From Octopus sinensis (lineage: Eukaryota), in assembly GCF_006345805.1 (NCBI RefSeq), contig NC_043023.1:11036001-11100000 (forward strand): a DNA stretch of 64,000 bases. The letters are read 5' to 3'. Below the pieces are notes generated by a model. That model saw nothing but the letters and a program-made list of their open reading frames with translations, had not been told where the DNA came from and searched no databases. Positions within the stretch are counted from its first letter, which is position 1, and every line of letters begins with the position of its first letter. The position numbers and the translations under genes were made by a program. This document shows positions 11,127 through 40,833 of the stretch, one piece after another.

Positions 11127-11155
11127 GGATTCCGATAGAATCATGTACTTAAAAG

Positions 11156-12928
11156 GGTTAATATAGGGCGTAACAAATATCAGAAAATCAAAAAAAAAAT
11201 GTGTGTAATAGGTGTAAAACAACTTCCTATGAACGAATATGAAAAAAAAAATTCGCGCACGCGAAAGGGGGGTGGGGGAGAGGCCTCGGAATATTTATAT
11301 CGGGAATTTCCGAAAGCGTCTGAACCGGGCACAAAAACAAAAACAAAAACAGCGTAATAGGTGTAAAACAACTTGCTCTAAACGACTATCATGAAAAAAA
11401 TGCGCGCTCGCGAAAGGGGGGTGGGGGAGAGGCTTCGGAAATTTCACATCTTCAGTCCACGGCCTTTAAACTAAGAAAAAATAGTGTAATTGGTGTAAAA
11501 CTACTTGTTCTAAACGAGTATCAAGAACACACACTCACACATGAATCATAAACTCCGTATTTCGCAAAAAAAAAAAATAAAGAGAAGAAATTCTGGAAAA
11601 AGTGAAGAAATGTTGGATCTCATTCCTTGGTTAAAGCTATTTTAAACATTAAATTTATGCTTTTCTTTGAAATAGTTCAGATATATGCAATTCTTCTCAC
11701 TTATTAAGATGCATTTATCAGAAAAAAAGAGACAGAAAAAATTATTATTTTGTGTCAATCCTTCCCTAATTATCCTTTATTAATTAGTTTTGGCGTGTAT
11801 TTTTTTCCCAAATTTATTTTTTCACCTTTACAACACTGTTTAGTAAAGCAATTAATTATCTTTATAATTTGCATATTTGACTTATTAATCAAAATTCTCT
11901 AGATGTAATATATACTAAGTAATGCATCCTTCATTTATGTGTTCCGTTCTGTATTATGCATGCGTGACTGTTTGTATGTAAGTGTGTTTAACTGTGCACA
12001 TGAATGTGAATATTAAAGAACATATTTATTTACTATGATTGTTATTTTCAGAACAAATAAATCTTTTGGCTGTTATGTTATTGATGTTATTATTATTGCT
12101 AGTTAAAGGGTGGTGACTTGGCTGAATATTTTGAGTCTTGTAGTATGTAGTTGTGTTAGTCAATATTCTGAGTTCAAATCCAACTCATTTCTTTATCATC
12201 ATTATCGATGGACCACTCAAAGAGGTATGTATACATTATCATTTTCGTAACATAATTTCTGTAGTATTTCAAGATGTTTCTGACACGTATTTTGATTCAC
12301 ATGGCGGAGATCCAACATTTCTTCACTTTTTCCAGAATTTCTTCTCTTTATTTTTTTTTTTTGCGAAATACGGAGTTTATGATTCATGTGTGAGTGTGTG
12401 TTCTTGATACTCGTTTAGAACAAGTAGTTTTACACCAATTACACTATTTTTTCTTAGTTTAAAGGCCGTGGACTGAAGATGTGAAATTTCCGAAGCCTCT
12501 CCCCCACCCCCCTTTCGCGAGCGCGCATTTTTTTCATGATAGTCGTTTAGAGCAAGTTGTTTTACACCTATTACGCTGTTTTTGTTTTTGTTTTTGTGCC
12601 CGGTTCAGACGCTTTCGGAAATTCCCGATATAAATATTCCGAGGCCTCTCCCCCACCCCTCTTTCGCGAGAGCGCATTTTTTTTTGTCATATTCGTTTAG
12701 AGCAAGTTGTTTTACACATATTACACTATTTTTTTTTGTTTTGGTGCCCGGGTCAGCTCCTCAGACGCTTTCGGAACTTCCCGATGTGAATTTTCCGAGG
12801 CCTCTCCCCCACCCCCCTTTCGCGTGCGCGAATTTTTTTTTTCATATTCGTTCATAGGAAGTTGTTTTACACCTATTACACACATTTTTTTTTTGATTTT
12901 CTGATATTTGTTACGCCCCATATTAACC
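11156..12928. mobile_element. Long-TIR (foldback-like) non-autonomous DNA element, copy A, 8-bp TSD CTTAAAAG
   Basis: Termini GGTTAATATAGGGCG..CGCCCCATATTAACC; TSD at 11148-11155 and 12929-12936; inverted arms ~11156-11620 and ~12308-12928 around an AT-rich spacer. Confidence 0.9.
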
Positions 12929-13333
12929 CTTAAAAGATATGCACTGGTAGAGTTAAGAGTGAAGGTGAATAATATGCGCGCTCAGTATTTAAGGTTAGGG
13001 TTTCGCCGAAAACGGGTGGTGTGCGTATTCTTTACCTCCGACAGGGTTGAGTAATGTCTGAGGTTTCGGTCAATGGCTGGTTGGAGTCAAGATATTAGGT
13101 AGTATATCTCGACTTTACACACAGAGAAAAACTAACCCTACGAGTATTTAGCGCCCGAGGGGCTTGCCCACCTTACACCTTACTTTAAATAATACGTTGT
13201 GGGTATAGGGCAGTTTCCAGAAGAAAAAAAAAAGTAATATAAAATGCTTATGTATTTGTATTATTTGTCTATAAAATAAATATAAGATTTTAAAATGTCA
13301 GCTTTTATTATATTCGTTATATATATTGTGAGT

Positions 13334-13538
13334 TATACTAGCCATCTCAAAATGTCTAACCACTAAGGGTGGGTGTTACTGTAGCTTGTATCCCCAGGAG
13401 AACATCGTCTCCAGCTGGCTTTAGGCACACTTTCTGTGCCCTTATGCCTAAAGCCAGCTGGAGACGATGTTCTCCTGGGGCTACAAGCTACAGTAACACC
13501 CACCCTTAGTGGTTAGCCATATTGAGATGGCTAGTATA
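13334..13538. mobile_element. Near-perfect ~205-bp hairpin MITE (duplicate at 27776-27980)
   Basis: tatactagccatctcaa...ttgagatggctagtata; arms of ~90 bp. Confidence 0.85.
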
Positions 13539-37497: not shown

Positions 37498-38646
37498 TCA
37501 TTGTCCTGTATGAATACTAGTTACATGGTTAGTTAAGTTAGCATTTTGTGCAAATGATTTACCACAGATATCACACTGATATGGCTTCTCTCCTGTATGA
37601 ATACGTTGGTGTCTCTTTAAAGCATAATTTCGAGAGAATGATTTACCACAGATATCACACTGATATGGCTTCTCTCCCGTATGAGTACGTTTGTGCATAG
37701 TTAAGTTACCTTTTTGCGAGAATGTTTTACCACAGATATTACAATGATATGGCTTCTCTCCTGTATGAGTGCGTTTATGTAAATTTAAATTATCTTTAAA
37801 GAAAAATGATTTGCCACAGACCTTTCAGTGGAATGGTATGTTACCTGCATGAATCGTTCTGTGCCAAGTTAAGTACCAATTCAGAAAGAATGATTTACCA
37901 CAGATGTCACAGTGATATGGCTTTTCTCCTGTATGAGTATGTTTATGACCCTCTAGGTATCCTTTCTGAGAGAATGATTTACCACAGGTAGCACAGTGAT
38001 ATGGTTTCTCTCCTGTGTGATTACATTGGTGTACATTTAATGCTCCTTTTTGCAAGTATGATTTAAGTTGTTAATTTTTTGGCTCAAAAATCAAAAAGCA
38101 AGGCCATGTAGGGGGACATGGAGTTATGTACAGGGTGGTGTTCATGTAAAGAGTTCAGGCCACTTGTGGTCAAGAGAGACTTTGAACCGAGCGGTCGTCG
38201 GCATCTTCACTATCTCGTCCGGCAGCTTATTCCACGGATCCGCAACGTGGACGGAGAAAGCCCCTCTTCTTCGATTGAGATGAAATCGTCACAGATAGAG
38301 CTTTTTGGAGTGACCCCGCAGCCGATGCTCTGGAGCAGGACTGAAAAACAGCTCTTTCGAGAGGTTACACTTTCCGCTTATGATGTTGTGATTTACGACA
38401 GCCATCACAGTGATATCGTTTCTTAATATGAATGTATTTGTGTTTGGGTAAGTCCCTTTTTTCAATAAATGATTCACTACAGACATCACAAGAATACAGT
38501 TTCTTTCTGGTTTGAATATGCTGTGCATTTGATTGTCCAGTTTGAAAGGTCTTCCCACTCGTATCACAGCTGTATGGTGGGTTTTCTATCTTTAATAGTA
38601 TCATTTCACGAAACAAACAATTCTGTAGGTTTATTTCACAATTCAT
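37498..38646 (-). pseudogene. C2H2 ZNF pseudogene copy 2, ~9 fingers
   Basis: Same CR1 insertion and TGA (37825-37827) as copy 1, plus one extra finger at 37594-37677. Confidence 0.88.
38066..38388 (-). mobile_element. CR1-clade LINE 3' fragment, copy 2
   Basis: TSD tgattta at 38059-38065 and 38389-38395. Confidence 0.88.
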
Positions 38647-39651
38647 TTTCCTTAGACATTAAATAAGTACCAGTTATGCACTGGAGTCGATATAATCGAC
38701 TTAATCCGTTTGTCTGTCCTTGTTTGTCCTCTTTGTGTTTAGCCCCTTGTGGCTAGTAAAGAAATAGGTATTACGAATCATTCCTCTTGCTGGGGGGGAA
38801 TTGTACTACACCTATCAGATATAGCTGATATAAAATACTCACAAATATCCATTGATTTTGTATCATAAATAAAAATTTTAGAATCTTAACACATTTAACA
38901 ATTCGACATTTTAAGCAAGATTTCAAAAAATAAAATAGATTTTATTCTTGTTATCGTGACGTGTATTTGCCATTTAAATATGGCTAACCCCTAATAGGGG
39001 GGTGCTACTGTAGTTTGTAGCCCCAGGAGGACGCCTCCTCCAGCTGGCTTTAGAGGTGTCCTCCTGGGGCTACAAACTACAGTAGCATCCACCCTTAGGG
39101 ATTAGCCATATTTAAATGGCAAATATACGTCACGATGTGTTGCAGCTACTTTTCATAACTCGCTCTAAGATTTATTCTTCTTGTTACGTCTGTGCAGAAA
39201 TAAAGTACGTTTCGCCATTTCTAATTCCGAGTCAGTTTTTTTAATTGCTATTTTATTTCCTGTGGAATCGCACCTTCGTTATAAATTACACTGAATTAAA
39301 TGTTACAGCAGGTAAGATATGATGCATACTTTTAGTAAAGATCGTTAAGGTGATCTTAAGTGTAAGTTTTTAATTGTCTGAATTACTAAATATTTAAACA
39401 TAGACTTAACACTATCACTTGTTCGTTATGGATACGTATACTATGTTTGTGATTGCATATATGCATGTGTGCTCTACGATTGAATCTTGCCAATACCCAC
39501 AAATACCTCATAAATCCTCCTTTGTTTTTATTTCGTTTTTTAGACGTTATAGTGTACTTTACGGAAGATTTGGCTGTTGTTTCTAGCAGTTCGGAAAATC
39601 ATGTAAAGGTTTCGTCTTTGCTGATTTCCATGACAACAGACAGTTCCGAAC

Positions 39652-40469
39652 GGTTAATATAGGGCGTTACGCCTATCAGAAAATCAAAAAAAAAATGTGT
39701 GTAATAGGTGTAAAACAACTTCCTATGAACGAATATGAAAAAAAAAATTCGCGCACGCGAAAGGGGGGTGGGGGAGAGGCCTCAGAAAATTCACATCGGG
39801 AAGTTCCGAAAGCGTCTGAGGAGCTGACCCGGGCACCAAAACAAAAAAAAAATAGTGTAATATGTGTAAAACAACTTGCTCTAAACGAATATGACAAAAA
39901 ATGTACAAAAATACGGAGTTTATGATTGATGTGTGAGTGTGTGTTCTTGATACTCGTTTAGAACAAGTAGTTTTACACCAATTACACTATTTTTTCTTAG
40001 TTTAAAGGCCGTGGACTGAAGATGTGAAATTTCCGAAGCCTCTCCCCCACCCCCCTTTCGCGAGCGCGCATTTTTTTCATGATAGTCGTTTAGAGCAAGT
40101 TGTTTTACACCTATTACGCTGTTTTTGTTTTTGTTTTTGTGCCCGGTTCAGACGCTTTCGGAAATTCCCGATATAAATATTCCGAGGCCTCTCCCCACCC
40201 CTCTTTCGCGAGAGCGCATTTTTTTTGTCATATTCGTTTAGAGCAAGTTGTTTTACACATATTACACCATTTTTTTTTGTTTTGGTGCCCGGGTCAGCTC
40301 CTCAGACGCTTTCGGAACTTCCCGATGTGAATTTTCCGAGGCCTCTCCCCCACCCCCCTTTCGCGTGCGCGAATTTTTTTTATCATATTCGTTCATAGGA
40401 AGTTGTTTTACACCTATTACACACATTTTTTTTTTGATTTTCTGATAGACGTAACGCCCTATATTAACC
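39652..40469. mobile_element. Long-TIR element, copy B, 8-bp TSD TTCCGAAC
   Basis: GGTTAATATAGGGCG..CGCCCTATATTAACC; TSD at 39644-39651 and 40470-40477; lacks the spacer present in copy A. Confidence 0.92.
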
Positions 40470-40833
40470 TTCCGAACTACATTCTTTTATTCTTTTACTT
40501 GTTTCGGCATTTGACTGCGGCCATGCTGGAGCACCGCCTTTAATCGAGCAACTCGACCCCGGGACTTATTCTTTTGTAAGCCTATTACTTATTCTATCGG
40601 TCTCTTCTGTATAAATGTATTTTATTGGCTAAAATTACATAAATTTAAATGCTTGTGTTAATTATTATTATTATTAATTTGTAGAAAAAGAAAAGGCAGC
40701 TTGCTGGCAGAATCATTATCACGCCGTCTTACTGTTCTGAGTTCAAAATCTGCCGAGGTCGACTTCGCCTTTCATCCATCCGTTCAGTGTCTCTAAATCG
40801 GTCAAACTCCAGCAAAAAAAAAAAAAAAAATAC

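Follow-up and report, generated by a model that had tools for sequence, protein, structure and literature searches.

A tandem duplication in an octopus zinc-finger cluster bounded by three copies of a foldback-like DNA transposon, with a chimeric copy at the junction

Introduction

Transposon-mediated unequal exchange is known from the Bar duplication of Drosophila, which carries roo/B104 at its junction, and from Alu–Alu duplications in primates. For the element Galileo of Drosophila buzzatii, ectopic recombination is accepted as proven where target-site duplications (TSDs) have been exchanged and the copies are chimeric (PMC2775673). Both signs are present at a locus of Octopus sinensis, where two tandem units are bounded by three copies (A, M and B, from left to right) of one non-autonomous element with long terminal inverted repeats (TIRs). 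The analysed sequence, referred to as the window, is a stretch of 64,000 nt (GCA_006345805.1, CM016885.1:11,036,001-11,100,000) from an assembly of this species that was built from PacBio and Hi-C data (10.1101/2023.05.16.540928). The window contains a cluster of C2H2 zinc-finger (ZNF) genes, and one C2H2 ZNF sequence lies inside each of the duplicated units.

The octopus C2H2 ZNF repertoire is among the largest of any invertebrate. The mechanisms behind its expansion have been called elusive (PMC12513265), and the link between transposons and ZNF number is known as a correlation only (PMC10547256). A preliminary description of the locus had claimed that recombination between copies of the element duplicated a ZNF-containing segment, and that the element family drives the expansion of ZNF genes here.

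Structure of the duplicated locus

The tandem duplication has a period of ~13.1 kb, and homology between its two units reaches the element ends on both sides, with the units aligning from end to end (Table 1). The first 8 bp of unit 1 are CTTAAAAG, which is the right TSD of copy A, and its last 8 bp (26543-26550) are TTCCGAAC; unit 2 likewise starts with CTTAAAAG and finishes with TTCCGAAC. A scan of the whole window encountered only A, C, G and T. The absence of any N places the whole region, including the junction at copy M, inside one contig.

Table 1. Positions of the features of the duplicated locus, numbered from the first base of the window
Feature	Position	Strand	Remarks
TSD CTTAAAAG, left of copy A	11148-11155		flanking 8-mer
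Copy A	11156-12928	+	1,773 bp; full-length non-autonomous element, A-type termini at both ends
Unit 1	12929-26550	+	13,622 bp
Patch F, templated insertion	18758-20288	+	1,531 bp; unit 1 only
C2H2 ZNF pseudogene, unit 1	24480-25546	-	323-bp insertion at 24966-25288; TGA at 24725-24727
Copy M, chimeric junction element	26551-27370	+	820 bp
Interval containing the exchange point	26808-27348	+	within the right arm of M
Unit 2	27371-39651	+	12,281 bp
C2H2 ZNF pseudogene, unit 2	37497-38646	-	323-bp insertion at 38066-38388; TGA at 37825-37827
TSD TTCCGAAC of copy B	left 39644-39651; right 40470-40477		flanking 8-mers
Copy B	39652-40469	+	818 bp; internally deleted derivative, B-type termini at both ends

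The middle copy is a chimera of the outer copies

Each of the outer copies lies in a perfect pair of 8-bp TSDs, CTTAAAAG / CTTAAAAG around copy A and TTCCGAAC / TTCCGAAC around copy B. Copy M has TTCCGAAC on its left and CTTAAAAG on its right, with neither a new TSD nor filler sequence. The termini of the element repeat this pattern. Two terminal subtypes are set by the bases just inside the ends, the A-type reading TAACAAATATCAG at both ends of copy A, and the B-type of copy B reading TTACGCCTATCAG on the left and TTACGTCTATCAG on the right; copy M combines a B-type left end with an A-type right end.

The interior of copy M is equally composite. Its left portion (26551-26807) has in common with B the terminal subtype, a second subrepeat that is missing from the left arm of A, and the junction of an internal deletion. 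The remaining 563 bp (26808-27370), which form the right arm, are collinear with positions 12366-12928 of A. Nine sites of the right arm discriminate between A and B, five of them internal (26827, 27092, 27119, 27169 and 27283 in M) and four terminal (27349-27351 and 27354), and every one of them is in the A state in M. The exchange point would fall within 26808-26826 if the five internal differences of B predate the event; they may instead be younger, since B has at least one proven private change, in its left arm. Private substitutions number three in M and one in A, the latter being a T>C change at 12918 that is lacking in M, in B and in a partial fourth copy within unit 1, patch F (see below). 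Three independent lines of evidence identify M as a recombinant, with B on its left and A on its right: the exchange of TSDs, the change of terminal subtype within the copy, and the joining of the B deletion junction to A-type right-arm sites.

Provided that the assembly is correct, the same evidence upholds the earlier proposal that the segment was duplicated by recombination. The preliminary description had also given the coordinates and sequences of A, M and B correctly to the base, and both the TSDs that it assigned to them, as read again from the flanking 8-mers, and the subtype switch that it reported in M are confirmed. It recognized three copies of one TIR element, which is right for A, M and B but leaves out patch F (18758-20288). 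A difference in structure had also been overlooked, with A measuring 1,773 bp and B and M 818 and 820 bp, respectively.

Architecture and classification of the element

The terminal 15-mer GGTTAATATAGGGCG, allowing up to two mismatches, occurs seven times in the window, while 0.15 occurrences are expected from shuffled sequence. Three of these are left ends (11156, 26551 and 39652) and four are right ends (12928, 20182, 27370 and 40469). The long TIRs are composed of ~156-bp subrepeats, of which the right arm holds 2.7 copies; the left arm of copy A is one subrepeat short. In copy A the arms are complementary over 176 nt at 96% and over 379 nt at 99%, and they enclose an unpaired centre of ~685 bp. 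The terminal arms of B and M measure 203-205 nt (~204) and are 97-98% complementary. Both are internal-deletion derivatives, in which the left arm extends through the first subrepeat into the second and there meets the inner end of the right arm directly.

Neither an open reading frame (ORF) nor a Pfam domain was detected in the element, which has no transposase, and the window contains no autonomous copy. The element is a non-autonomous, foldback-like DNA transposon. For its superfamily, the termini, the TIRs and the TSD length make Merlin-like the best guess. Merlin elements are described as having a conserved 5'-GG at their termini, TIRs that measure 24-462 bp, and TSDs of 8 or 9 bp (PMC8101967, citing Feschotte 2004). 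The same source counts 191 Merlin transposase sequences in Octopus bimaculoides, an unusually high number. The likeness lies in the 8-bp TSDs (two perfect pairs), the terminal GG of GGTTAATATAGGGCG and the long TIRs. The octopus element differs in being devoid of the DDE transposase of IS1595/IS1016 type that Merlin encodes, and its foldback arms made of subrepeats are not among the Merlin features stated in that account.

An identity as a hAT element was considered and rejected; the 8-bp TSD fits, but the termini start with GGTTA and the TIRs extend over hundreds of bp. The TIRs of hAT elements are short and start with YARNG. Both TSDs of the locus also match nTnnnnAn, the hAT TSD consensus. 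Long TIRs built from tandem subrepeats, with a 156-bp period in this case, are shared with Foldback- and Galileo-like elements, among which the FB element has a 9-bp TSD. The 8-bp TSD found here also differs from the 7-bp TSD of Galileo (PMC2775673).

A templated patch copied from copy A

Unit 1 is longer than unit 2 owing to the block termed patch F. Its donor is the segment 11506-13034 of the window, which extends from within the left arm of copy A to the right end of the element and includes the first 106 bp of the unit; patch F accordingly carries a right element end, at 20182. The insertion lies in a short interspersed nuclear element (SINE), of which 4 bp (GGAG) at the target have been replaced. 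The corresponding site is uninterrupted in unit 2 (33230-33243), and across it the SINE reads GACTGGAGCCTGGTG or close variants both in unit 2 and in seven other copies within the window. This indicates that unit 2 is ancestral at the site and that unit 1 lost GGAG. Each junction of patch F shows a 3-bp microhomology, ACT at the left junction and CCT at the right one, and the patch has neither a left TIR nor a TSD. Patch F is a microhomology-mediated templated repair or replication patch that was copied from A.

Two other origins were examined for patch F. A transposed copy was rejected on the grounds of the missing left end, the missing TSD and the 106 bp from outside the element that the patch includes. 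An origin as the remainder of a third unit was rejected because the patch has the internal region of A, which is lacking in M and B.

Patch F differs from its donor by four substitutions (0.26%) and retains the ancestral T at the position where A later changed (12918). The duplication came first, followed by patch F and then by the private change of A, unless the duplication and the patch arose together. Templated insertions at repaired breaks arise via polymerase-theta end joining or via microhomology-mediated break-induced replication. Patch F resembles them in the microhomology at both junctions, the small target deletion and the nearby donor. At 1.5 kb, however, it is long for templated end-joining filler, and a replicative template switch is more typical of this size.

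The ZNF gene in the units is a pseudogene

Both units carry the same C2H2 ZNF sequence, the pieces of which match the Pfam families zf-C2H2 and zf-H2C2_2 with E values of 1e-9 to 9e-35. The sequence is interrupted by a 323-bp insertion that ends in an A-run and splits one finger. In unit 1 this insertion is flanked by a 7-bp TSD, TAAATCA, at 24959-24965 and 25289-25295. In silico removal of the insertion together with one TAAATCA restores a perfect finger, YHCDGCRKSYLQKGALNVHQCNH, within a continuous array, which keeps one TGA at the position of a finger's first cysteine. The insertion is a retroposon; it has no Pfam match and no other copy in the window, and one of its reading frames resembles the C-terminal tail of a LINE (long interspersed nuclear element) ORF2. 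An intron was rejected as an explanation for the interruption, since the 7-bp TSD is present and excision gives a perfect finger.

The presence of both the insertion and the TGA in both units indicates that the ZNF was dead before the duplication. Thus, the duplicated ZNF-containing segment of the preliminary description holds as far as the duplication is concerned, while the ZNF within it is a pseudogene. The pseudogene in unit 2 has one additional 84-bp finger (37553-37636), and finger number therefore keeps changing even in a dead gene. Apart from the ZNF, no stop-free segment of at least 60 aa in unit 2 has a Pfam match.

The window contains three intact ZNF genes, at 490-2070, 41987-43678 and 49625-50896, and all of them lie outside the duplication. 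Two of them belong to an inverted pair (41558-43845 and 49457-51324; 563 and 423 aa), the members of which are ~90% identical and five fingers apart. The inverted pair stems from an older duplication, and the element is absent from its borders. A weak integrase-core (rve) fragment (51659-52075) lies just outside it. The third intact gene (490-2070) encodes a 526-aa ZNF, at the C-terminal end of which a 10-12-aa motif without a Pfam match is repeated in tandem about twelve times.

The claim that the element family drives ZNF expansion here is not borne out. The locus records one event that copied a dead gene, the intact ZNF genes lie outside it, and no copy of the element borders the inverted pair.

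Divergence between the units

The alignment of unit 1 with unit 2 contains 65 substitutions in 12,075 aligned columns (0.54%), comprising 43 transitions and 22 transversions (ratio ~2), and an additional 18 indels. The transition bias indicates that the units are two genuine biological sequences and not one sequence emitted twice; they are either paralogues or alleles. Outside two substitution clusters, the divergence is 0.34%.

The first cluster (15438-15671 in unit 1, 29900-30140 in unit 2) contains 17 of the 65 substitutions and several indels. It occupies the loop and the inner parts of the arms of a palindromic element resembling a miniature inverted-repeat transposable element, the arms of which contain telomere-like GGGTTAG/CTAACCC repeats, and one of the indels is exactly one GGGTTAG unit. 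The second cluster (20961-21058 and 33910-34007) has 9 substitutions within ~100 bp and may be a gene-conversion tract from some other repeat copy. In addition, a 63-bp difference in repeat number at 36631-36693, within a SINE-associated tandem array, gives a spurious ORF a length of 201 instead of 180 aa.

Origin of the tandem duplication

The tandem structure, the chimerism of M, the lesions common to both units and the order of events are read directly from the locus. Exchanged TSDs and a chimeric M in the absence of a new TSD are explained by a homology-dependent exchange between B and A, and the tandem duplication was probably produced by an unequal exchange of this kind. In a first step, two copies of the family would have inserted independently and in direct orientation, ~12 kb apart, in the ZNF cluster, a full-length A at the CTTAAAAG site and an internally deleted B at the TTCCGAAC site. 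B on one chromatid or homologue would then have paired with A on the other, and the exchange would have been resolved within the shared 563-bp right arm. The expected product has the order flank, A, unit, chimera M (B-left/A-right), unit, B, flank, and its duplicated cargo would be repeats and one C2H2 ZNF that had been inactivated beforehand. Afterwards, the units would have acquired the 0.54% substitution divergence, gained or lost a finger repeat, and received in unit 1 the 1.5-kb patch from A. The recombination pathway is inferred, and the hairpin-prone long inverted repeats may have helped to start the exchange.

Several points weigh against a biological exchange. The duplication is known from the sequence of one assembly alone and in duplicated form only, the units diverge by 0.34-0.54%, about as much as two haplotypes of these octopuses would be expected to, and a computational join through the right arm would give the same chimera. 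A serious alternative is a haplotype false duplication, in which each chromosome has one unit and the assembler placed two alleles in tandem, after a read ending in the right arm of B was overlapped with a read starting in the right arm of A. The 0.54% substitutions, the indels and the 1.5-kb structural difference resemble allelic variation at the ~1.2% heterozygosity of this species group, and the private differences of M could be allelic variants of A and B. The assembly is of the PacBio and Hi-C type, presumably with continuous long read (CLR) chemistry and without purging of haplotigs. False haplotypic duplications, however, usually occur at contig ends beside gaps, and the window has neither a gap nor an N. 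The sole possible false overlap comprises 563 bp at 98% identity, while long-read overlap graphs would favour much longer true overlaps, and assemblers of noisy reads would normally be expected to collapse alleles that are ~0.5% apart. A false duplication is therefore considered unlikely. For comparison, the heterozygosity of O. vulgaris is 1.22% (10.1101/2023.05.16.540928).

A single replicative event with template switches, through break-induced or microhomology-mediated replication and without a meiotic crossover, is given the same low probability. A broken fork would have re-invaded the homologous element, producing the B/A chimera, and patch F would have been copied in the same episode. 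Patch F shows that template switching has occurred at the locus: it bears the signature of such a switch, with 3-bp microhomologies, a 4-bp target loss, a nearby donor that includes non-element flank, and neither a TIR pair nor a TSD. Moreover, the divergence of patch F from its donor (0.26%) is close to that of the units outside the clusters (0.34%), and the two events need not be far apart in time. The M junction, on the other hand, requires homology only and has no microhomology scar and no filler. The absence of A's private T>C from F, M and B and the closer similarity of F than of M to A fit two separate events. The sequence of M would be the same after a crossover and after a replicative template switch, and cannot decide between these pathways.

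It is very improbable that the duplication arose in two steps, with a larger duplication of A, unit, B and flank by any mechanism, followed by a deletion between the first B and the second A that left M. This sequence of events would end in an identical structure with a chimeric M, but it invokes two rearrangements where one is enough, and no trace of an extra flank is found in the window.

Alternative transposition of the ends of two elements, which is also known for maize Ac/Ds, would require that a hybrid element formed by one B end and one A end on sister chromatids was cut and reinserted. Such transposition makes duplications and inversions (PMC2775673), but it is hardly credible here, as reinsertion would attach one end or more to a new target and create a new TSD, whereas the sides of M are the old B-left and A-right junctions and its switch within the arm is a sequence chimera, which transposition does not produce. 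Homology-dependent unequal exchange between A and B thus remains the preferred explanation of the duplication.

Other features of the window

Three further repeat pairs with 89-96% identity (4993-6798 and 56728-59014; 53325-54513 and 61616-62853; 8342-8801 and 8997-9450), of which two are inverted and one is direct, are probably copies of interspersed elements. A 166-aa ORF (7285-7785) resembles the final part of a reverse-transcriptase ORF from a retroelement and has no Pfam match. Rfam and tRNA scans of the window gave no matches. An exact look-up of six ORFs of the window returned no public record, and none of the window proteins was found in the protein-cluster collection that was consulted. 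The 526-aa ZNF matched a single public contig, CM016885.1 itself, which agrees with the window at each of the 12,070 bases compared. A homology search with the 563-aa ZNF retrieved generic vertebrate ZNFs and no octopus match; no match was obtained with the 93-aa N-terminal piece of the ZNF pseudogene, or with a query that combined the regions outside the fingers of the 526-aa and 563-aa proteins.

Significance and comparison with known systems

The locus shows, base by base, one route by which a tandem segment in a ZNF cluster can be doubled. The event itself is ordinary, and the copying of a dead gene points to cluster turnover and not to functional gain. The combination of mismatched TSDs and a mixed terminal subtype in one copy is a signature that could be used in a genome-wide search. 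A wider role of this Merlin-like, foldback-armed family as a recurrent recombination substrate across octopus ZNF clusters is a speculative and rather improbable extension; if it were true, copies with swapped TSDs would mark many duplication junctions genome-wide, and they would provide a concrete molecular mechanism for the very large C2H2 expansion of cephalopods. On this reading, the hairpin-prone arms might themselves provoke breaks.

In the Bar and Alu–Alu duplications, as in the octopus locus, a single repeat copy occupies the junction of the tandem units and the parental copies stand at the outer borders. The repeats are retroelements in those cases, whereas the octopus duplication involves a DNA transposon, the intact TSD pairs of which reveal the parental sites.

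Galileo, a Foldback-like element of the P superfamily (PMC2775673), shares with the octopus element its non-autonomous nature and its long, internally repetitive TIRs. In both systems, exchanged TSDs and chimeric copies with a mappable switch point are diagnostic of the rearrangement (PMC2775673 for Galileo). The Galileo copies, however, are inverted with respect to each other, have 7-bp TSDs and gave rise to inversions, whereas the octopus copies, with 8-bp TSDs and GG termini, lie in direct orientation and are associated with a tandem duplication. As a tandem duplication, the locus is the counterpart both of the Galileo inversions and of the classic cases of unequal exchange between repeats, and it adds one more case to a mechanism that is already known.

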